A stretch of DNA of 64,000 nt from Oopsacas minuta (Eukaryota > Animalia > Porifera): positions 186,001-250,000 of the forward strand of contig JAKMXF010000266.1 in NCBI GenBank assembly GCA_024704765.1, written 5' to 3'. Shown piece by piece: positions 2,344 through 39,400 of the stretch; position 1 is the first letter of the stretch, and the number at the start of each line of letters is the position of its first letter. The position numbers were made by a program, and so were the translations under genes. The notes under the pieces are model-generated. The model was not told the origin of the DNA. It was given only the letters and a program-made list of their open reading frames with translations, and did not search any database.

Positions 2344-5300
2344 ATGGCCAGTGGTTATGGTAGCAGTTGTCATCTACCAGTATTCTGCATTCCATTCCCT
2401 GAAACTCGTCGTATAGCAAATTCAACTGGAAATCTCCACAATGTTAACGTTAATCCCGCTCCAGAAAATGATTTTAAAATCCCCACTACTTTGAATACAG
2501 AACTCTATCATGAATATTCTGACAATTATAAGAATGCTATCTGCGAAGACCCCGCTAGAAAAATATCTGATACTAGCACATGGAGAGGTGATGAAGAATT
2601 TGTTAACAAGATTGATTATAACTTGAATAATGGAGACGAGGCCTCGATTACACAGATAGAGGATTCTGTATTTTCAGAATCAATCCGACCTGTCAAACGT
2701 CATACACCACCTAATGATATTTTACGCTCAGATAGAACAATACATAACGATACATACAATATTCCTAATGGAAACAGTAACTTGAAATTATCAAAGCTCT
2801 TCAATAGGTTTAGCAAACGACGTAAATCTGCTTGTGATTTGAGAGAGTATTACTCTGACACAGAACGTGAAGTTAAGGAAAAGAACAAGGGGAAAATAAG
2901 GTATATATTAGCAACACTATAACACATTTGGAATTTGATATTCGGCCTTGATTTTTGACATAATTTTTGCCATTAATTTGAATATTAATAATTAATATTA
3001 TATTAATATAGGTGGGGAAATAAAGAAGAGAAAACTTCGACTTGGAGACACAGTAATAGTCGAGAAAAGCTATCTAGTTTATCTCGTCTATCATCAGTTG
3101 ATATGAAGGGTTATTTGTCAGAAGAATTGCCGTATCGTCGTGACGTCAAAGGTAGGCGGATTAGGAAATCAATTAGCTTTGATTATCTTAAAGATAGAAT
3201 GTTTAATTCCACGTCTACACCTCCAAGATCTCGACCTGGTTCTCAGGTTAATATCCACGAAATTTCACACACAAATCAATCGAATTCAATATCGTTTATT
3301 TCTGATGATGAATCTGTTGGGAGTAGAGTTGGATCAGTTTCTATGCTCGGACGCAAACAAAATGCTATTTTATCTAAACTTTGGATTGCAGTTTGTCAGG
3401 CAAATTTTAACCGTGTTAAACATCTGGTGGAAACTTCCAATCTATCACAATCACTTTTTACTGAGAACATTCAACATGATGATTTAACCTTATTCGATCT
3501 TTCTTTACTAACGAATCATGACAGTATTATATCTCTTCTCGCAGCAAATGGATTTAGAGAAAGTCAGCGCTATTCACGCGACCCTCTTCTCAGAATCGCG
3601 AAATTTAAAGATATAATAATCGCAATTGAGCGGCAATTAATGGATTTATCCGAGACAATTACATCTAGTGAAAACCAAAGAGATATAGAGCGTAGAATAA
3701 ATAACAATGAAAATAAGCTGAGATTTTACCGTGTAGTAAATTTTGCCATACAAACAATAGGTTCACCTTCCCCTCCTACGCAAGTTATACTGACTGTCCG
3801 TTCAAATTCATCTTTACAAATTTCCTGGAGACAGCCATTACAATTCAATGAAGCTATAGTTACCAAATACCTAATACAATGGGAAAGGCGAGAATCGAAT
3901 TTTGGATTTGAAGGAGAACATTTGATTACAAACTTTACTGAGCAAAAGAGTGAAATGAGCTTTACTATCCCAGATTTGTGTCCTGGTGTTAAGTATTTTG
4001 TTTGTGTTTTTGCCGCGAATGTGAAAGGTTGGTCTGAGCCTGCTAACTCTAACCCAGCAGCAGCTGCTCCCTCAAATTGGAGAGAATGGAATGGTGCAAA
4101 TAAACATAGAATCGACCCGTACGATATCAATAACATAACTCGGTTACAAAAACAGACAAATCAAATAATTGAGGGATGCAAGGAATATTGTTGGAGACTT
4201 GCAAATAATGACAGACATAATAGTAACCATAAAATAGTCAATAAGTTAAAAAATAAAGGATCGGCTATCACACGGTTTTTCAAAGCTCCACTCAAATTCA
4301 CTCGACAAGTACAAGCATCATTTTACATTGGTATTCTAGTGTATACTGAGCACGAGTATACTTCCAAAAAAGATCATTATCAAATACTTCTAACTCCAGA
4401 AGGCTCTGTCCCAATTATACAATTAGATCAGAGTGTATCTAACTCGCTATTGACCGATATGAGTGTATTTCAATGGCTTTCTCTTGTCATAACTCAATGG
4501 AATTGTATTAAAGATATAGTCTATGAAATAGCTGGCATGGGAGATTCAAATTCAGTTATTTTACGGAGAAAACTGCTTAAAATATTATTTGACATCCAAG
4601 AAAGTTTAGGGCTTAAGACCATCGGGTCTTTGCATTATATTCCTATTGAACAGTCAGATGGTGCTACGATATACTGTCTAGTCAGTAAAGTTGAAGATTT
4701 GAGATATTTTCAACCAACAGGGGGTCTAAAATGGTCGTATATACCATCTAATGCTAACAAGCACGCAATACACTCTAACAGTCTGAAAGATGGAACAGAT
4801 TATCACAGTTTATTCTCTTTTATGAGTATTTGTCCAGAAATGGTAGAATTCCATAGAAATTCTAAAGCAAGGCCATCACCTGGTTTATACCTGTCTCTGT
4901 ATAAGCTAAGAACAAACATGAATTATTTGTCGATTTTAAGTGAATTGGAGAGTGTCATTCTCTTCCCTAGTGTTAAAATCCGCGAAAATTCCAACGTATC
5001 CAAAGAAGAATGGATTTGGATTCAAAATCTTGGAACTCTAAAACAACCAAAATCAGGAAAGAGAAGACAAGTCCCTGATGTAAATGGTGTAGGTTCGAAC
5101 TTGCAAACTCTAATAAAACAAGCTTGGCACTGTCTACGATCTAAGCTAGGCATTACAGCAGAACTAACTCAAGACTATTTACTCTATACGAATGAAATCA
5201 TTGAATTACACGATGATATTTCGATCTTATTTGTGATACCTCCTCCTTCACACGTTGTCACATCTCCTGGTGTTCAAGATGAGTTCGTATTTAACTCTAA

Positions 5301-29318: not shown

Positions 29319-30464
29319 ATGACATCATCATACGATACTATAGTGGTGGGTGCAGGTATAGAGGGATCAGCTACTGCTATGTACTTGGCTATCAAAGGCA
29401 GTAGAACTCTGTTATTGGAACAATTCGAGCTGGAGCACACACGAGGAAGTTCCCACGGAGGTAGTAGGATAATTAGGTACAATTATCCTGAGTCATTCTA
29501 TGTTGAAATGATGAAGAAAGCATATCCGTTATGGAGTGATATTGAGAAGCAGGCTGGAGTTAAATTAGTTGAAAAGTGTGGTGGTATTACCTTTGGGCAT
29601 CGTGATCACGTGGAAATAAGGAACGGCATTGAATCTCTGTCGAGAGAGAATATTCCCCATTCTGTAATCGAGAGTGACGAAATTCAGAAAAGGTATCCAT
29701 TCTTGAATCTACCAGATGATTTTGTAGTCGTAGCAGAACCTGATTCAGGTTATGTATATGCTAGAAAATCCTTGAAAGCAATGCAGAAAATATTCGTATC
29801 TAATGGAGGAACTATTCTTGATATGCATAAAGTAGTTGGTATTACTCCAGGGAGAATAATCAGGGTAAAAACACTGAAAGGTTCCTTTCAATGTAAATCA
29901 TTGATTATATGTGCTGGTCCATGGACTAACAATGTATTAACAGACACTGGGCTAAAACTTCCTATTACACCTCATAGAGTTTGCATTTCTTTCTATAAAC
30001 AAACAGATTCTGCATTTGATAATATTCCTATCTTTATTTACAGAGCTCAGAATGATCCCGGCTTCCATTACTATGGCATGCCGGATTCTGAATATCCGGG
30101 TTTATTCAAAATTTGTGCTCACAATGGTGTGGCATTGTCCAACCCAGATGATCGTGACACGAATAGTGATTATTCATTCCTTGAATATACAACTAATTTC
30201 ATTGCCTCAAAACTTCGTGGAGTTTCATCTAAGCCTAGTATCCTTGAGACTTGTATTTATACGCTTGCACCAGATCATAATCCATTTCTTGACAGACATC
30301 CTCATTTTCATAATATTGTAATTGGAGCAGGATTCTCTGGTCACGGATTTAAGCTTGCTCCTGTTGTTGGTTCTATTCTCTCAGGCTTAGCTTTACATGA
30401 AGAGATCGATTACGATATTTCTCATTTCAAGATTTCACGTTTCAAATCAAATTCTAAACTATGA
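29319..30464 (+). CDS. PIPOX: Peroxisomal sarcosine/pipecolate oxidase, copy 1
   Basis: FAD motif IVVGAGIEG, RGSSHGGSRIIR, flavinylation Cys in ETCIY, GAGFSGHGFKLAPVVG, C-terminal PTS1 SKL. Confidence 0.92.
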   Translation: MTSSYDTIVVGAGIEGSATAMYLAIKGSRTLLLEQFELEHTRGSSHGGSRIIRYNYPESFYVEMMKKAYPLWSDIEKQAGVKLVEKCGGITFGHRDHVEIRNGIESLSRENIPHSVIESDEIQKRYPFLNLPDDFVVVAEPDSGYVYARKSLKAMQKIFVSNGGTILDMHKVVGITPGRIIRVKTLKGSFQCKSLIICAGPWTNNVLTDTGLKLPITPHRVCISFYKQTDSAFDNIPIFIYRAQNDPGFHYYGMPDSEYPGLFKICAHNGVALSNPDDRDTNSDYSFLEYTTNFIASKLRGVSSKPSILETCIYTLAPDHNPFLDRHPHFHNIVIGAGFSGHGFKLAPVVGSILSGLALHEEIDYDISHFKISRFKSNSKL

Positions 30465-30933
30465 ACATATGATTTCTATGATGTCATCTTTATATTGTAT
30501 TGCTGCTCCTATAGGGAGAGTGTAGTCCTACCTCTTTATATTGATGAGGTTAGTTTAGCCCGGTCGCCCGCGTTACTTTGAAATTCTGCGATCTGAATTT
30601 CCTAAAAATTCCTAACATGGTATCATCAGCACATTTGGGGTGTAGTCAGTAGATTTGGTCCAGGAGTACGACTTTGGTAAATATTTCACACCTAGAGGCG
30701 AGTCATTTAATTTTGATGCATTTATTATGTAAATGCGAAAAGATAATAGAGATTAGGTTCCACATCTTGTAAGGTGTAATTCTAAGATGTTTTAGTATAC
30801 GTAAACTATTGAATTTTGTCTTTCATAATAAAGTCTTTATTTAAAGCTGAGTGTACTAGTTTCTCAATTTTGTAGGAAAGGTAATTGCTTAGACTAAAAA
30901 TTCTAAAACGATTCACTTCTTGAATTCTTAGCG

Positions 30934-32076
30934 ATGACATCCTCATACGATACTATAGTGGTGGGTGCAGGTATAGAGGGATCAGCTACTGCTATGTACT
31001 TGGCTATCAAAGGCAGTAGAACTCTGTTATTGGAACAATTCGAGCTGGAGCACACACGAGGAAGTTCCCACGGAGGTAGTAGGATAATTAGGTACAATTA
31101 TCCTGAGTCATTCTATGTTGAAATGATGAAGAAAGCATATCCGTTATGGAGTGATATTGAGAAGCAGGCTGAAGTTAAACTAGTTGAAAAGTGTGGTGGT
31201 ATTACCTTTGGGCATCGTGATCACGTGGAAATAAGGAACGGCATTGAATCTCTGTCGAGAGAGAATATTCCCTATTCTGTAATCGAGAGTGACGAAATTC
31301 AGAAAAGGTATCCATTCTTGAATCTACCAGATGATTTTGTAGTCGTAGCAGAACCTGATTCAGGTTATGTATATGCTAGAAAATCCTTGAAAGCAATGCA
31401 GAAAATATTCGTATCTAATGGAGGAACTATTCTTGATATGCATAAAGTAGTTGGCATTACTCCAGGGAGAATAATCAGGGTAAAAACACTGAAAGGTTCC
31501 TTTCAATGTAAATCATTGATTATATGTGCTGGTCCATGGACTAACACTGTATTAGCATACACTGAGTTAAGACTTCCTATTACACCTCATAGAGTTTGCA
31601 TTTCGTTCTATAAACAAACACATCCAGTATTTGATAATATTCCTATCTTTATTTACAGAGCTCAGAATGATCCCGTATACTATTATTTCGGAATGCCAGA
31701 CTCTGAATATCCGGGTTTATTCAAAATTTGTGCTCATGATGGTGTAGTTTCAGATCCAGATGATCGTGATTTAGATAATCAGTATTCATTCCTGAAATAT
31801 ACTTCAGCCTTCATTGCCTCAAAACTTCGTGGAGTTTCATCTAAACCTAGTATCTTAGAGACATGTATGTACTCAATTACACCAGATTACCATCCATTTC
31901 TTGACAGACATCCTCATTTTCATAATATTGTAATTGAAGCAGGATTCTCTGGTCACGGATTTAAGCTTGCTCCTGTTGTTGGTTCTATTCTCTCAGGCTT
32001 AGCTTTACATGAAGAGATCGATTACGATATTTCTCATTTCAAGATTTCACGTTTCAAATCAAATTCTAAACTATGA
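30934..32076 (+). CDS. PIPOX: Peroxisomal sarcosine/pipecolate oxidase, copy 2 (tandem paralog)
   Basis: Same motifs as copy 1 (ETCMY, GFSGHGFK, SKL). Near-identical to copy 1 except in codons ~205-320. Confidence 0.9.
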   Translation: MTSSYDTIVVGAGIEGSATAMYLAIKGSRTLLLEQFELEHTRGSSHGGSRIIRYNYPESFYVEMMKKAYPLWSDIEKQAEVKLVEKCGGITFGHRDHVEIRNGIESLSRENIPYSVIESDEIQKRYPFLNLPDDFVVVAEPDSGYVYARKSLKAMQKIFVSNGGTILDMHKVVGITPGRIIRVKTLKGSFQCKSLIICAGPWTNTVLAYTELRLPITPHRVCISFYKQTHPVFDNIPIFIYRAQNDPVYYYFGMPDSEYPGLFKICAHDGVVSDPDDRDLDNQYSFLKYTSAFIASKLRGVSSKPSILETCMYSITPDYHPFLDRHPHFHNIVIEAGFSGHGFKLAPVVGSILSGLALHEEIDYDISHFKISRFKSNSKL

Positions 32077-32443
32077 GTATAGGACTTCCATAGATAGCGT
32101 CACTTAATTAATATACTTATATAACTCGAATTGGCCGAGTTCTTTGTGGAATGTTGAGTTGTATATCAATTTATACTACTTGGATCGATTTTCATGTATT
32201 TTCTCAGCTTAGTAACTCTATTGTGTTTGATTAAAACATATTTGTATACAATTTACTGATAATTTTCATTAATCAACTACTTCTAAATTGTATGGTAGCT
32301 CTTGCACTTGTACTTCTACTTATTGGAATCTCATTTAACTCAATCCTTGCGAAATCTTATACCTATTAATTATACGGCTAATTAATTTGGTATAAAATAC
32401 AATGTATCCTTTTAATCGATAAAACCCTATAAGGTTTGTTAAA

Positions 32444-33646
32444 ATGGCCAAGGAAATATTTGATTCAAAATGGGACGATTTGGAGTACCAAGTAAATACT
32501 TTTTGTAATCATTTAATCGCGAAAGCAAATGAAAAGAGGTGTTACTTACTTCAAAAAATACAAGATTCTAAATTTCAAGCTAAACACATTGAAGATTCAG
32601 TAGGACAGTTGAAAAATGGGATTGCTGTATTAGAAACAGAATTGAAAGGGAATAGTATAAAGGAATGCCAAGAAAAAATGTTGAAAGAGATGAATACAGA
32701 GATAAAATCCCTCCTTCTTACTGAGCCTACCCCTTCAGATTTTATGCTAGTGACAGTAAAAAGTGAGATTCTAAATTCAACTATAGATAACCTAGCTTCT
32801 ATAGTTAAAATCCCCAAGCAATATTCATGTAAAGATCTCCCAAAGTACACGATTGCAAAAAATCAAAATTTTGTATTGAAATATCCACGTAGCATTTCTG
32901 TAGATGAATCACTCGATTTGATTGCTATAGTTGATAAAGGCTGTAAGTCCATATTTCTTTTCACTCTATCGGGTAAATTCATTAATCAGTTTGGTGAGAA
33001 AGTGCTCGACTACCCAGTTTCCGTTAAGATCGCTAATAATCAAGATATCTACGTAACAGACGCCCGTGCAAGTAATAGTATTGTTAAATTCAGGGCTGCG
33101 AAGGGTAAATTCTCTGAAAAGATTCATCTTGTAAGTACTGTCAATGGGAAATATGAATATCCCACTGGATTAGATTACGATCCCTTCACCAACCTCCTCT
33201 ACGTCACATTATCTACTGAACATGCAATTGCTATATTTTCACAAAATCTAGCCATAAAAGAAAAGTTCAACTCTTCTATATATTTTCCACAAGATATAAA
33301 AGTTACTAAAGATGAAATATTTGTATTAGATTTCAATAATCCTTGCTTGCATGTAATTTCTAAGTTAACATATGCTACCATTAGGTCAATACTACCACGA
33401 GGAATATCACTACCATTACAAACAGCTGCGTTCTTCTGTTTAGACAGAATAGGCAATATTGTTTTATCTGATGCTCAGAACCATAACGTACAAATATATT
33501 CCCCATCAGGGCTTCTATTGCATACTTTAAGCCAAAAAGGGCATTCAATCGGTGAAGTATTTGTACCATCAGGAGTATATGTAACGAAAAATGATGACGT
33601 AATTGTTGCCTCTCAGAATTCTAATTACCCAATCCAGATTTTCTAA
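32444..33646 (+). CDS. Coiled-coil + NHL-repeat protein (TRIM-NHL-like, without RING/B-box)
   Basis: N-terminal helical segment, then NHL repeats (LKYPRSISVD, FGEKVLDYPVSV, YPTGLDYD, FPQDIKV, IVLSDAQNHNVQIYSPSG, FVPSGVYV). Confidence 0.8.
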   Translation: MAKEIFDSKWDDLEYQVNTFCNHLIAKANEKRCYLLQKIQDSKFQAKHIEDSVGQLKNGIAVLETELKGNSIKECQEKMLKEMNTEIKSLLLTEPTPSDFMLVTVKSEILNSTIDNLASIVKIPKQYSCKDLPKYTIAKNQNFVLKYPRSISVDESLDLIAIVDKGCKSIFLFTLSGKFINQFGEKVLDYPVSVKIANNQDIYVTDARASNSIVKFRAAKGKFSEKIHLVSTVNGKYEYPTGLDYDPFTNLLYVTLSTEHAIAIFSQNLAIKEKFNSSIYFPQDIKVTKDEIFVLDFNNPCLHVISKLTYATIRSILPRGISLPLQTAAFFCLDRIGNIVLSDAQNHNVQIYSPSGLLLHTLSQKGHSIGEVFVPSGVYVTKNDDVIVASQNSNYPIQIF

Positions 33647-33709
33647 TAATTGTTGATAATTCTTATTTATTTATTCCAACTATTATATTAAGTGTTCCTT
33701 ACTAGATCT

Positions 33710-35218
33710 ATGAATTATCCCATATACACTGAATTACCCATACAAGATGCGTTTGTAATTGAGTACAGAGCTTTTAGCGATAGCAGGGGGTATTTAGCTG
33801 AGTTATATAATTCAAATAAATACAAGCAAGCAGAAACTGAGAATCTACAACAAATTACTCTATCGCAATCAAAAAAGAACGTATTACGCGGTATCCATAA
33901 GGTCCCATACTCTAAATTGGTAACCTGTGTAAGGGGGGCGATTTATGACGTCATTGTTGACCTACGTCATAATTCACCAACATTTCTGATGTGGGTGAGT
34001 ATAGTACTGACTCAATCAAATCATAAACAACTGTATATACCTGCAGACTGTGGACACGCGTTTCTATCTCTAGAGAATGATACTCTAGTCGTTTACGGTC
34101 AAAGCCAGCCATTTAATCCAGCACTTGAAGACAATTGTAGATTTGATGATCCATTCGTTAATGTATACTGGCATCTTGATATAGCTAAGCTTGAGATTTC
34201 TCCTAAGGATAGAGATACTGCATTATTGATACCTGACAATCTTCCCAAAGGATTATCTCCTCATAGAACTCGCATCTTGATTATAGGAGCTTCAGGCCAG
34301 TTGGGAAGTATTTTAACTTATAAATTACAGAAATATTACCAATTGCAGTACGTTGTATACGGAACATATTGTAATAACAAAGTTGATACTCATTGTGTTA
34401 AAATGGATCTGAATTCTTCTTCTACTGAGAATACCTTTAGTTACCATTCCTTATTGCAACTATGTCACCCGAATATAGTGATAATTTGTGCAGCCATGAC
34501 ATGGGTAGACGGCTGTGAAAAGTCGCAGAATAAAGCTTATGATATAAACTGTAATGCTGTATTTTCGTTATCCTTAGAAGCGAAAAAGATTGGCGCAAAG
34601 ACCATATACATTTCAACAGATTACGTGTTTGGCGGTGTGCTTCCTATCTATGGAGATAAATACATGGAAGAGGATACCATTTCTCCATTGAATGTGTACG
34701 GAAAAACTAAGCATAGAGGAGAGCAATTTGTGTTATCCATAAGCAAAGATAATCTTGTGGTGAGAACAAGCTCACTATTCGGACCTGATAAGTTAAACAA
34801 GAATTTTCCATGTCAAGTTGTAAGAAAGTTGAAGGATAATCTGAAATTTCCAGCATTCAGTCATGTAGTAAGTACACCCACGTACACAGTAGACCTTGCA
34901 GAGTGTATTATTCAGTTGTTAGTACATGACTGTAGTGGTGTAATGCATTTAGCTGGACCTGAATCAGCTAGCAAGTATGATTGGGCATTAAAAATAGCGA
35001 ATAGCTTCAACTTGGAAAACACCTTGATTGAGAAAGTGGACTCTTTTCCTGCGCTTGTTGCGAAACGACCTCTCAACTCGAGTTTAGCGAATAACCGCAT
35101 TGGTTATATTTTGCCTGAGTTTAAGTTCAGAGGGATACAGGATGCTCTGGAGGACTGGATGATTAATTTTCCAGATTCTCTTGATGACATTGTTAATCCG
35201 ACTAAATCTAAGCTTTGA
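33710..35218 (+). CDS. rmlCD: Bifunctional RmlC-RmlD fusion: NDP-4-keto-6-deoxyglucose 3,5-epimerase + 4-reductase (L-rhamnose pathway)
   Basis: N-half RmlC cupin: DSRGYLAELY, VLRGIH, KLVTCVRGAIYDVIVDLRHNSPTF, LYIPADCGHAF, TLVVY. C-half RmlD SDR: IIGASGQLG, AAMTWVDGCE, YISTDYVF, NVYGKTK. ATG at 33710; ends KSKL. Confidence 0.9.
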   Translation: MNYPIYTELPIQDAFVIEYRAFSDSRGYLAELYNSNKYKQAETENLQQITLSQSKKNVLRGIHKVPYSKLVTCVRGAIYDVIVDLRHNSPTFLMWVSIVLTQSNHKQLYIPADCGHAFLSLENDTLVVYGQSQPFNPALEDNCRFDDPFVNVYWHLDIAKLEISPKDRDTALLIPDNLPKGLSPHRTRILIIGASGQLGSILTYKLQKYYQLQYVVYGTYCNNKVDTHCVKMDLNSSSTENTFSYHSLLQLCHPNIVIICAAMTWVDGCEKSQNKAYDINCNAVFSLSLEAKKIGAKTIYISTDYVFGGVLPIYGDKYMEEDTISPLNVYGKTKHRGEQFVLSISKDNLVVRTSSLFGPDKLNKNFPCQVVRKLKDNLKFPAFSHVVSTPTYTVDLAECIIQLLVHDCSGVMHLAGPESASKYDWALKIANSFNLENTLIEKVDSFPALVAKRPLNSSLANNRIGYILPEFKFRGIQDALEDWMINFPDSLDDIVNPTKSKL

Positions 35219-35407
35219 TTGTTTATTTATGAATGTATTTTTAGTATAATTATTAATTATATTTTGCCCCCTTGCCCAATTGCATTACCAGAACATTGCA
35301 TATGGGAATTTATCGTTTAGATTTGCCTATCGTCTCGTTTTCCATATTTCGATTTTGCGTTTAACAGAATTAATGCATTAACTTATTTATTTCTTAAAAC
35401 TGTAGCA

Positions 35408-36232
35408 ATGCATGATTCTCATAGCGATGATGACGAGTTCTGGGGTATAGGGAAATCATCTCCCAAGGCATCTCATATTGTAGCTCCATCTCCTGTAAAG
35501 AAAGGAGACATCAAATTAAGTTTTTCAATACCTAGTCTCACAACTTCTCCAGTCTCTACCACTGCTTTTGAATCAACACCTAGACGATACAGCCCTCTAT
35601 CTCAAAGCATTGATAAGATAGCTCCCAAATACATAAGTCCATCAACCAACAAACCTCTAAGCTACAGCAACGAATCCTCTTTAGATACTAGCATATCAGA
35701 TTCAAATGTTGAGTTTAAAACTTCATCATTATACCCAGATGAAGATAAGTCAGATTTGCATGATATTTTGGATGCGTTGCTTAATTTCGAATCCACCATT
35801 GAACCATCTAATGACGTCACATTGAGTAATCCTTACACACATTCTTTAACACAAGCACCAGTTGACAATTACGGAAATACATCTCGGCGTCAGGAGGTTG
35901 AGAGAGAAAACTCACGACTTGCTAAACAGATAAAACAGAGCAAACCTTGTGTAGTTAGATCTTCTCATGGACAAGTTAGCATTATTAAATCAACAGCTGC
36001 TCCAGCAAGTATAAATAGAACACGCTTGACTCGAATTGAACAGGAAAATTTAAATCTCTTAAAACGCATCCAGTCAGCGAAAACTAGCAAGGCGATCTCC
36101 AGAAGGGAACATGAGAGGCATTATGAAAGCCATAAGGTATACGGAAAAATATCTTCCAAGCAAAGATCCTTGGATTCTTCACCGGGCATAAAATCTATGT
36201 CTAACTTGTCAAAACCTGAATGGATAGCATAA
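35408..36232 (+). CDS. CFAP97: CFAP97/KIAA1430 (hemingway)-domain protein
   Basis: Ser-rich N-terminus followed by the two motif halves RQEVERENSRLAKQI and ASINRTRLTRIEQENLNLLKRIQSAK. Confidence 0.75.
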   Translation: MHDSHSDDDEFWGIGKSSPKASHIVAPSPVKKGDIKLSFSIPSLTTSPVSTTAFESTPRRYSPLSQSIDKIAPKYISPSTNKPLSYSNESSLDTSISDSNVEFKTSSLYPDEDKSDLHDILDALLNFESTIEPSNDVTLSNPYTHSLTQAPVDNYGNTSRRQEVERENSRLAKQIKQSKPCVVRSSHGQVSIIKSTAAPASINRTRLTRIEQENLNLLKRIQSAKTSKAISRREHERHYESHKVYGKISSKQRSLDSSPGIKSMSNLSKPEWIA

Positions 36233-36446: not shown

Positions 36447-39400
36447 ATGGCAACGGGCAGTTCTGGTACCAATGAATCTGGCATGGAGCAACGATTTGAG
36501 GTATTTATATACTATTTACAATGATGTGTAACAATCTTAACCGATTACGGTCGAATTCTACCTTGATAGTGAAAAGGAACACCAAAATTTTACCACTTTG
36601 TTTTAAACAATTCCCGCACCAAAACGAGATTTTAGCACCTAGCACCTTCTTGAAGTTATAAAATAACACATTTTCCCAGCCGTATTCGGTTAAGTTTATG
36701 AATTTAATTATTTTGGCCCATCTAATCTGGCATGTAATGCATTCCATAGGATATCCAGCTGTTTTCAACAGATCAACAAGATGGAGAAGCTGGAGTTTAC
36801 ATTGAAATTGATACAGATTATCTTGAGTCCCAGAACGAAGATGATATTCCCGATTCCGACTTCCCAGAAGAGAATATTTCATCGCTTGAAGAGAATTTAG
36901 ATACTTCTTTCCAGGTATCAAGTAATTCTTCTATTTTTGATATTTCAAAATATTTTTCACCATATTCTAAGGGTTGTTCAAAAGATGCTAAAGGTTGGTT
37001 ATCAATATTATTTGCCTTGGTTCATCACCTTTAGATTTGACACACATTACGTATTTAGGTTATATTGAATTATCAGAATTACTTACCAATCAAAAGGATC
37101 TTCTAAATCTGAAGCCCATTGGGCAAACTCACCACATATCTGGTATAAATATACAAAAAGGAGATGTTGAAAAAATCGACACATCCAATTTGTTGAATCT
37201 GCTGGATGTCATGCTTAGGAAGATTATCCTCGTGGATCATTCAAGTCGTGAAATTTCTATTGAATCCCCATCTACCGAAATTGATTCTTCTAGTACAAGT
37301 GAGAATTTTTGGGATTCAATGGGTGGGCCACAGATTGAACTAAATACACAGATATACCCAATGGATGTATTTTTGATTCTTTATCTTTCCGCAGACCCTC
37401 TATTTCAACGAAAAATATTGCAAAAACTAGCAAAATGCAAACTCTCATTGCCCCTAATAATTTCTGATCCATCAGCATGTCAACCTAAAATATTTGCTTT
37501 TCCGTTCCAATCTCTTTCTAGTGAATGGAAGAAAGATGCAGGCGACGAGAAAGCAAGAGAATCCATATTATTTAATGAGCCGATGCCAATAATTAGCTTT
37601 ATTCGATTTGGAAAGCACTCATCAGACAAATTTTCCAAATCTAAAATTCTCAACAACATCCTTGGGTTTAATCATGACTGCTTTATCCATCGCAATAGTC
37701 CTGGAAGTACAAAATCTCGTGTTCTATTTAATGGGACAGTAGAGCTTGCTTGGTTTCTTCCAAAAAGGGGTGACGAAAATAGGTTTGCTAACCCAATTAC
37801 TTTTCTAAATTTGAGGGGCAATGCAGCTGAACATTTGAAACAATTAAATTTCATACAACTATTATCTAATAAGATATTTCTTATTTTATGGTCTGATGAC
37901 ATGCAAGAAAGTGAAATTGAATCGCTGAAAGAGCTATATAATAAAGCGGGGGATAAAATTGTATGTTTGTTCCCCAGTTTTACTCAGGAAGCCAAAAAGA
38001 TTATACAATCATGCCCAAATGTAAAAGGAGATAATAAACATGCGGTTATGTTAGGAAAAGGAAATTTAGCAGCAGATACTACTGCTTTGTGTCGTTTAAT
38101 CGATCTCCACTCTCAAGATCCTTCTGAGAAATTGTGCTCATTAGCTGAGCATATTGATCAAATTAACCACGGACTGGAAATAGACTGTAACGAATTGTAT
38201 TTCAAGGAAGCTGAACTTGAAATTGATTTATATACGAAACCATTACTGATTGACTCGGATCAATACTGTACAAAAGCCCTTCGTCATATAAAAGATACAT
38301 ATCTGGTGCTTCAGGGTAAACATTGGGAAGATTGGTGCAAGTTTCATACAGAAGGGTACCGTTTGAAGAATTTGGATAATGTTAATCTGGAGGAGTATAG
38401 GAGCCAACTACGTACTCAAATGAATGAGTGTAGGAACGCACAAATCGATATTTTGAATAATATTAATAATATGAAATTCCTCTATGAAATTTTAAAAATA
38501 TGTAGGTTTAGTTTCATCAAACCATTTTACTCCGAACTTTTCTGGAATAAATTACAACTTTCTCTTGATAGGATATGTGCAGAGCATTTACCAGCACTCT
38601 ATGAAGAGCATAATATGATATCAAAGCTTAAGAATATACGTGGTCACGTCGAATCTAACCCATCTAGTCCTTATGCAAATCTCACTCAAGCTCAACTAAA
38701 AACTGAATTCCACAAGTCAGCAAGGAATCTTAGCAAATCCTCTCTTGGTATGGAGCATATATTTCGTGAATTATCCCAAGTATTTGAAGCTTATTCATCA
38801 GCTTCTGCTGAACAAAGAAAATCATTGGATCAAAAGTTGCCAATTGATATAAATAATTTACCAATATTCGCAGCAAACTTTCTACTCCAGGGCTACCCAC
38901 TAGAAATTCTAGATGGAGACGTATCCCATGTGCCAACTGTGTGGCTATCTAAGGTATTGGAACATCTCAAGATCATTATAGGGAATAAACTTATTTATGT
39001 CGTGTCAATCCTCGGTGTTCAAAGCAGTGGGAAAAGTACTTTACTGAATACAATGTTTGGATTGCATTTTGCTGTATCTGCTGGTCGGTGTACTAAGGGT
39101 ATTTTCATGCAAATGATTCCAGTTAGTCCTGATTTAGTTGACTCACTTGGTTACGATTACTTGGTAGTCCTCGACACTGAAGGATTGCGAGCTCCAGAGT
39201 TGGATAATGAGGTTAACAGATTCCATGATAATGAGTTAGCCACTTTTGCAATTGGGCTGAGTCACTTGACTATTATCAATATCATGGGCGAGAACCCAAC
39301 TGATATGGAGGACATTCTTCAAATCACTGTTCATGCATTTTTACGCATGAATCTAGCTTGGATTAAACCGCGTTGTATTTTCGTCCACCAAAATGTCACT

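Follow-up and report, generated by a model that had tools for sequence, protein, structure and literature searches.

Rhamnose synthesis is treated as absent from animals except nematodes, which is why antimicrobial research has taken the pathway as a target; nematodes have been called unique among known metazoans for this ability (PMC10473587). Against this background, the genome of the glass sponge Oopsacas minuta raises the question which enzyme is encoded by a gene combining two bacterial-type rhamnose-synthesis domains, and how an animal came to have such a gene. The gene is located in a stretch of 64,000 nucleotides, here called the window (NCBI GenBank assembly GCA_024704765.1, contig JAKMXF010000266.1, positions 186,001 to 250,000 of the forward strand), and its product is an RmlC-type cupin fused to an RmlD-type short-chain dehydrogenase/reductase (SDR). 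A first interpretation made from the letters alone (the sequence-only reading) had described it as a bifunctional enzyme embedded among animal genes. Taking all lines of evidence together, we consider it rather probable that the gene encodes a functional eukaryotic RmlCD enzyme, that it is an old animal gene and that it carries a peroxisomal signal in the sponges. The core enzyme itself is of an already characterised kind. New, or scarcely noticed so far, are the fusion in animals, the evidence of its age there and the conserved peroxisomal signal of the glass sponges, the last being unexpected.

Domains, catalytic residues and relatives of the protein

A single and intact open reading frame (ORF; 33692-35218, forward strand) holds both domains without an intron, as the sequence-only reading had said. 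The open-reading-frame listing gives a protein of 502 amino acids (aa) from the ATG at 33710, a start chosen by the N-termini of the orthologs (MNYPIYT in Oopsacas compared to MSHPIYT and MSFPIYT). The Pfam family dTDP_sugar_isom (RmlC, PF00908) covers aa 9-172 with an E-value of 3e-48 and RmlD_sub_bind (PF04321) aa 188-465 with 1e-54. Matches in the PDB comprise the RmlD structure 2ggs (7e-36) and the RmlC structures 9kyn and 1ep0 (about 1e-27). An AlphaFold (AF2) model, computed with an alignment of 59 family members, reached a predicted local distance difference test score (pLDDT) of 94.4 and a predicted template modelling score (pTM) of 0.93, the latter implying a fixed arrangement of the two domains. 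The model superposes on RmlD at a template modelling score (TM) of 0.90 and on RmlC (6c46, 1ep0) at 0.87; none of its structure matches was a solved chain covering both halves.

The catalytic positions were judged on 59 fusions, 48 stand-alone RmlC and 44 stand-alone RmlD proteins, in which the motif residues are invariant or near-invariant. The cupin had been called a complete RmlC because of the His of RGIH, the Lys of SKLV and the Tyr of VVY; all three occupy conserved columns (His63, Lys69 and Tyr129) and are joined by Asp167 of the motif SPKD. Likewise, the GxxGxxG, STD and YxxxK signatures, taken as marks of a complete RmlD, were recovered in conserved columns as GASGQLG (Gly193, Gly196, Gly199), Ser302-Thr303-Asp304 and YGKTK (Tyr330, Lys334). 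Invariant across the 59 fusions are His63, Lys69, Tyr129, Asp167, Gly193, Gly199, Ser302, Tyr330 and Lys334, and at every column conserved to at least 85% the sponge protein matches the consensus. Domains, residues and the low rate of protein change described below indicate that the bifunctional RmlC-RmlD enzyme found among the animal genes is complete and apparently functional.

The fusion did not originate in this animal, since it is known as the eukaryotic RmlCD of microalgae (PMC6556577). The enzyme of Prymnesium parvum, named RmlCD, converts UDP- and TDP-4-keto-6-deoxyglucose (uridine and thymidine diphosphate derivatives, respectively) to L-rhamnose nucleotides (Wagstaff et al. 2019, PMC6556577), and the fusion occurs in haptophytes and in dinoflagellates of the Gymnodiniaceae (PMC6556577). 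Bacterial RmlC-RmlD fusions have been reported for 69 of 21,964 genomes (bioRxiv 10.1101/854612). The algal proteins have in common with the sponge protein the order of the domains (cupin, then SDR), a chain of about 500 aa and the same invariant catalytic residues. In a word-index search the sponge clade was followed by algal fusions with 36-40% identity and then by bacterial fusions with about 32%. Altogether, the identity is 36-41% to eukaryotic fusions and about 30-34% to the best bacterial proteins. In an exhaustive HMMER search of 1.84 billion representatives the score dropped from 837 bits for the sponge representative to 365 bits, and roughly a dozen representatives of eukaryote-type fusions followed below this gap. 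Judged by its sequence, the protein agrees with the eukaryotic RmlCD fusion family in every feature open to a test and belongs to a kind already known.

The same overall chemistry, 3,5-epimerisation and 4-reduction with UDP-4-keto-6-deoxyglucose as substrate, is performed by NRS/ER (UER1) and by RHM of plants, fungi and giant viruses. These enzymes have no cupin and use a single SDR active site for the two steps, whereas the sponge protein possesses a separate RmlC cupin, by which an enzyme of the NRS/ER type was ruled out. MAT2B, a homolog of RmlD that acts in animals as regulatory subunit of methionine adenosyltransferase, shares the SDR fold with the sponge protein, but has neither a cupin nor a role in sugar metabolism. 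This candidate was rejected, too, because a cupin is fused to the sponge SDR, the match to RmlD scores 127 bits compared to 100.9 for MAT2B (PDB 4ndn), and the protein nests in the RmlCD clade. In public annotation, animal RmlCD proteins are named MAT2B (Branchiostoma lanceolatum, Owenia fusiformis) and some entries 'SpsK-like'.

Nematodes resemble the sponge as an animal lineage with 3,5-epimerase and 4-reductase steps of the Rml type. Their pathway to the deoxythymidine diphosphate (dTDP) sugar dTDP-rhamnose reportedly consists of RML-1 to RML-5 (so Feng et al. 2016). The nematode rml genes are separate and have a different history, rml-3 originating from Chlamydiales-like bacteria and being restricted to Chromadoria (PMC10473587); the sponge gene, in contrast, is pre-fused and of eukaryote type.

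Some observations concern relatives outside the animals. Annotation has broken up the RmlCD gene of P. parvum (locus L007, 3001-5563), where a 346-aa model stands next to an RmlD fragment of 154 aa. In Cymbomonas tetramitiformis, RmlCD is extended by a DegT-type aminotransferase domain to a product of 861-885 aa, suggesting either a three-step amino-deoxy-sugar enzyme or a merged gene model. A compact, intron-free metagenome contig with a GC content of 0.39 (L008) contains RmlCD (3199-4650) amid two glycosyltransferase genes of family 11 (GT11), one of family 10 (GT10) and a 2OG-Fe(II) oxygenase gene. This contig may be giant-virus-like or bacterial, and it is possibly a vehicle by which the fusion spread among eukaryotes.

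Residence in the sponge genome and history of the fusion

Sponges host many microbes and eat algae, and an ORF without introns might be symbiont or food DNA misjoined to animal DNA. We regard such an artefact as practically excluded. GC content (0.374), GC content at third codon positions (GC3, 0.336) and codon use (r 0.81 to the pooled neighbours) are host-like, all of them lying inside the range of the flanking genes. Contigs of short reads from public runs of the same sample cross both junctions, that between the NHL-repeat gene and RmlCD being bridged in run X2 (33102-35228) and in run X3 (32083-33940). Run X5, from another study and under another organism code, contains a copy of 90-95% similarity with the same flanks. 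Furthermore, the gene order SDF-DAO-NHL-RmlCD-CFAP97 is kept in four other assemblies of diverged species (ERZ25069837, ERZ20067936, ERZ25072730 and ERZ25072740), in which the orthologs have 502 aa and 65-76% identity. This synteny refutes the artefact and, with the bridging contigs, disposes of the chimeric assembly join that the sequence-only reading had allowed for.

The neighbours are intronless as well. Each of them is a single ORF, including the gene of the 3,848-aa VPS13, and for this reason the missing introns are not distinctive and no sign of foreign origin. The mean number of introns per gene in the Oopsacas minuta genome is 1.59 (PMC10280926). The neighbour-like composition likewise carries no foreign signature, yet an old transfer is also compatible with it. 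Compared to the closest ortholog with DNA (locus L001), the ratio of nonsynonymous to synonymous substitutions per site (dN/dS) is about 0.10 at a dS of about 1.4; synonymous sites are saturated in the comparison with the most distant one. Because of the host-like composition, the bridging contigs, the conserved synteny and the low dN/dS we conclude that the RmlCD gene is old within the glass-sponge group and under purifying selection.

In run X1 the summed contig depth amounts to 242-335 for the NHL-repeat gene, 457 for RmlCD and about 17,000 for CFAP97, a roughly 40-fold jump. Between the latter two genes coverage vanishes at the sampled positions 35238-35380 (the bin 35173-35339 averages 153), and a GT..AG joint is present upstream of the gene after CFAP97. 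Runs X2 and X3 are flat. The profile of run X1 is RNA-like and consistent with transcription of RmlCD; against this it has to be held that the type of the run is not on record and that it is represented by contigs only.

The fusion is not confined to one animal lineage. We detected it in Branchiostoma belcheri, B. floridae and B. lanceolatum, in the annelid Owenia fusiformis and in the tunicate Styela clava, with 33-39% identity to the sponge protein and all catalytic residues kept. Three sequences are further close relatives, one of them 72% identical to the Owenia protein and another one sister to the annelids. Orthologous fusions across animals, which the sequence-only reading had named as a sign of vertical descent, are thus present in part. 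These genes reside on large scaffolds (1.4 to 62 Mb) and, unlike the sponge gene, contain spliceosomal introns (one in amphioxus, 10 in Owenia, 8 in Styela) and lack the peroxisomal signal. A literature search for RmlCD in animals gave nothing relevant.

Owenia and Styela have five introns in common in both alignment column and phase (at sponge residues 132, 198, 239, 387 and 465), the chance expectation for such coincidences being 0.05 (P about 4e-9). None of the shared introns occurs in Prymnesium (6 introns mapped) or Cymbomonas (1), one Prymnesium intron lying 1 nt from the shared site at residue 198. According to the alignment mapping, the single amphioxus intron is not shared with Owenia or Styela. 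The shared introns indicate a single intron-bearing ancestor of the annelid and tunicate genes, and therefore the fusion dates back at least to the last common ancestor of protostomes and deuterostomes.

In a full-length maximum-likelihood tree of 56 fusions (LG+C20+F+G4), bacterial and eukaryotic fusions are separated, the latter forming a single clade (support 100/100). The sponge proteins belong to this eukaryote-only clade together with the algal ones, but are placed outside the algal clade, whose 35 rows exclude every animal (100/98). Amphioxus and annelids group together (95/94); the sponge clade, Styela and one metagenomic row are basal in the free tree, without resolved order. When all 13 animal rows were constrained to one clade, the log likelihood (lnL) was 7.3 better than that of the free tree (P of the approximately unbiased test, p-AU, 0.61). 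Separate phylogenies of the two domains, recommended in the sequence-only reading, were calculated with stand-alone bacterial RmlC or RmlD added. They bear out a fusion of eukaryotic type and do not lead to bacterial donors: the sponges are grouped with amphioxus and annelids (Shimodaira-Hasegawa-like approximate likelihood ratio test, SH-aLRT, 87 for RmlC and 81 for RmlD), this group is sister to the algal fusions, and the bacterial fusions are found elsewhere. The placement of the sponges inside the eukaryotic fusion group has a support of 81 in the RmlC tree and 94 in the RmlD tree.

Both domains belong to the Rml type of bacteria and not to the NRS/ER type of plants and fungi, bacterial RmlC-RmlD fusions exist, and nematode rml-3 is a documented acquisition from bacteria (PMC10473587). 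These facts would suit a direct bacterial transfer, be it of separate rmlC and rmlD genes fused later or of a bacterial rmlCD fusion. Such a transfer is nevertheless highly improbable, since the full-length tree gathers all eukaryotic fusions in one clade without bacterial ones, both domain trees place the sponges inside this eukaryotic group with the bacterial fusions elsewhere, and the identity to the best bacterial proteins is lower than that to eukaryotic fusions. A recent transfer from bacteria is rejected by the full-length tree and by both domain trees.

We are therefore inclined, with some confidence, to regard the sponge copy as a vertically inherited old animal gene which would have been lost in most lineages. 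The fusion predates the sponges, and most likely animals had the gene before the split of sponges and bilaterians. Glass sponges, Oweniid annelids, amphioxus and a tunicate would have retained it, while it would have disappeared from the other lineages. At its root there is likely a very old acquisition of domains that are ultimately of bacterial type. Only in this distant sense does the horizontal acquisition proposed in the sequence-only reading hold; a sponge-specific transfer is disfavoured, as no bacterial or algal donor group encloses the sponges.

Alternatively, it might be that a pre-fused RmlCD gene was transferred separately into the ancestor of the glass sponges from a eukaryotic or viral donor outside the sampling (such as an alga, another protist or a giant virus). 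The sponge gene would then be independent of the bilaterian copies and would have lost any introns, taken on the composition of the host and gained the -SKL ending. We consider this course of events possible, though doubtful. The distribution of the gene in animals is very patchy, and the microalgae on which sponges filter-feed carry the fusion, with the 36-40% identity mentioned above compared to 33-39% for other animals. The viral- or bacterial-looking contig L008 carries it among glycosyltransferases. A constrained tree uniting sponges and algae apart from the bilaterians is not rejected by the test (p-AU 0.18), and the stem branch of the sponges is long (1.2), so that their basal position may be an artefact. 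Conversely, the sponges are outside the sampled algal clade, the tree uniting them with the algae falls 8.8 lnL short of the free tree and about 16 lnL short of the all-animal tree, each domain tree puts the sponges with amphioxus and annelids, and there is no identifiable donor lineage. The p-AU of 0.18 and the long sponge stem weigh against vertical descent, too, as do the many losses demanded by the patchy distribution and the moderate support of the animal grouping in the domain trees. Moreover, the sponge genes have no introns, and the intron argument is thereby limited to annelid and tunicate; among the collected sequences we identified no RmlCD of a unicellular animal relative or of a sponge outside the glass sponges.

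The peroxisomal signal and the proposed function

Six of the seven sponge orthologs end in -SKL, the most distant one in -SKI. The five residues before this tripeptide agree in only two to five of the seven (columns -9 to -5 in two to four), and pLDDT drops to 54 in the penultimate and to 34 in the final block of 10 residues, the last 10 or so residues being the sole disordered part of the model. A conserved -SKL on an exposed tail, the canonical peroxisomal targeting signal type 1 (PTS1), predicts PEX5-dependent import, and a peroxisomal location appears to us the more probable one. The proteins of amphioxus, annelid and tunicate lack a PTS1. Like most algal proteins they end in '...NPRGKxLxx', whereas the sponges have the variable tail and -SKL. 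Among the 460 collected proteins (176 of them fusions) a C-terminal [SAC][KRH][LMI] was restricted to the sponge clade and one dinoflagellate subclade (Biecheleria, Gymnodinium smaydae, Amphidinium), which mostly ends in -SRL, -ARL, -AKL or -SRM. By this sequence comparison the PTS1-like ending arose independently, at least twice, in the RmlCD family, which argues that it is functional. That the PIPOX-like genes upstream of the sponge gene end in -SKL as well is a probable coincidence.

Sugar-nucleotide enzymes bearing a PTS1 are located in the glycosomes of trypanosomatids and set a precedent for nucleotide-sugar synthesis in a peroxisome-derived organelle, albeit with different enzymes and in a different lineage. 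We know of no comparable case in animals. No publication on RmlCD in peroxisomes, or on a peroxisomal step of rhamnose synthesis, came up in a literature search.

According to the proposed mechanism, a 4,6-dehydratase of the TGDS/UGD type, which animals are known to possess, would provide UDP- or dTDP-4-keto-6-deoxy-D-glucose. We accept the earlier suggestion that this step has to be encoded elsewhere; vertebrate TGDS makes UDP-4-keto-6-deoxyglucose (PMC12488480, PMC13080230). The cupin domain would epimerise C3 and C5, with His63 as base, Tyr129 as acid and Lys69 and Asp167 assisting. Subsequently the SDR domain (GxxGxxG for NAD(P)H; Thr303, Tyr330, Lys334) would reduce the 4-keto group, and by analogy with the P. 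parvum enzyme the product released would be the nucleoside diphosphate (NDP) sugar NDP-beta-L-rhamnose. The fusion would hold the unstable intermediate between the two adjacent sites, and the -SKL tail is expected to direct the folded protein to peroxisomes via PEX5. Hence, the enzyme most likely finishes the synthesis of an NDP-6-deoxyhexose, probably of L-rhamnose, and the NDP-rhamnose or related 6-deoxyhexose suggested in the sequence-only reading remains the most likely product by comparison with P. parvum RmlCD (PMC6556577).

Several points count against parts of this picture. P. parvum RmlCD is the only assayed member of the family, and the activity of the sponge protein and the other animal copies is predicted by analogy. 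The product is not fixed by the sequence and might be L-rhamnose or another 6-deoxyhexose such as 6-deoxy-L-talose. With the NCBIfam models rmlC (TIGR01221) and rmlD (TIGR01214) the protein scored 136.5 and 197.6 bits, respectively, and missed the equivalog cut-offs (155.75 and 224.05); it is a homolog of RmlC and RmlD, but not a strict bacterial equivalog. To our knowledge, no peroxisomal nucleotide-sugar step has been described in animals. A transporter or dehydratase supplying a peroxisomal substrate did not turn up, the rest of the genome not having been searched for a dehydratase, and no dehydratase gene lies near RmlCD in amphioxus, Owenia or Styela.

With the same history the enzyme might also have another job, such as the synthesis of a different 6-deoxyhexose nucleotide, or, in glass sponges, the consumption or detoxification of 4-keto-6-deoxyglucose nucleotides or an action on some other substrate in the peroxisome, in place of supplying glycans with rhamnose. 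The scores below the equivalog cut-offs would be in line with this, and relatives of RmlC and RmlD with other stereochemistry are among the PDB matches (NovW, a 3-epimerase of the D-allose pathway, heptose epimerases). A conserved PTS1 is unexpected in an enzyme that supplies glycosylation in the Golgi, and a literature search for rhamnose in Hexactinellida gave nothing relevant. We consider such a job unlikely, because the protein retains every catalytic and near-invariant residue of genuine RmlC and RmlD, L-rhamnose nucleotides are the products of the one family member assayed, and the other animal copies have no PTS1.

The sponge, amphioxus, annelid and tunicate genes show that animals possess a second set of rhamnose-type enzymes, unrelated to that of nematodes and probably old. 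They also provide an evolutionary context for TGDS, whose vertebrate product, identified only in 2025, is the exact substrate of RmlCD. As a tentative idea, early animals might have run a full UDP-L-rhamnose pathway from a TGDS-type dehydratase to RmlCD. The pathway would still operate in amphioxus, glass sponges, Oweniid annelids and some tunicates, and its last two steps would have been moved to peroxisomes in glass sponges and, convergently, in dinoflagellates. If this is true, vertebrate TGDS is the surviving first step of a lost pathway, and there is a nucleotide-sugar step in an animal peroxisome.

Neighbouring genes and local observations

The flanking PIPOX, NHL and CFAP97 genes, regarded as clearly metazoan in the sequence-only reading, were found as described by Pfam and PDB matches (Table 1). 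Further flanking genes encode VPS13, an SDF transporter and large GTPases of the URGCP/GVIN type; all neighbours are on the forward strand.

Table 1. Features of the RmlCD gene and its neighbours in the window (nucleotide positions within the window).
Feature	Position	Strand	Basis or remark
RmlCD gene	33710..35218	+	single exon, 502 codons + TGA stop
RmlC-type cupin domain, aa 9-172, predicted NDP-4-keto-6-deoxyhexose 3,5-epimerase	33734..34225	+	Pfam PF00908, PDB RmlC chains, fold
Interdomain linker, aa 173-187	34226..34270	+	gap between the two Pfam envelopes; pLDDT ~91
RmlD-type SDR domain, aa 188-482, predicted NAD(P)H-dependent 4-ketoreductase	34271..35155	+	Pfam PF04321, TIGR01214 2e-58, PDB 2ggs, fold
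Disordered, sequence-variable C-terminal tail, aa 491-502	35180..35215	+	low pLDDT, poor ortholog agreement
C-terminal Ser-Lys-Leu, canonical PTS1 tripeptide	35207..35215	+	-SKL/-SKI in 7/7 sponge orthologs
Two tandem sarcosine-oxidase/PIPOX-like DAO genes (29319-30464; 30934-32076), both ending in -SKL	29319..32076	+	PDB 7exs 9e-61
NHL-repeat gene, upstream; stop 63 nt before the RmlCD start	32444..33646	+	Pfam
CFAP97/Hemingway-family gene, downstream	35408..36232	+	Pfam; same position in ortholog loci L001, L002, L011

The tandem DAO genes have an identical C-terminus, RFKSNSKL. The window has two copies, the most distant ortholog locus (L002, 1-4370) four or more. In ERZ25072730 the NHL gene beside RmlCD is split in two ORFs on one contig (L009, 2684-3891) and intact with 402 aa on a second (L010, 487-1695); the two versions are probably haplotigs, one of them frameshifted. 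Just beyond CFAP97, two ortholog loci contain a galactosyltransferase gene of glycosyltransferase family 31 (GT31) type (L009, 6681-8461; L011, 6575-7519), compared to the URGCP/GVIN GTPase genes of the window, and the region downstream of the conserved block has therefore been remodelled.

A multi-copy repeat (36509-36700) lies between CFAP97 and the URGCP/GVIN GTPase gene. Its summed contig depth is about 1,270-2,800 (first bin) in all four runs, including that of the other organism, and many loose ends occur there. In the RNA-like run X1 a GT..AG joint from 36498 to 36748 skips the repeat, which may sit in an intron of the 5' untranslated region of the next gene.

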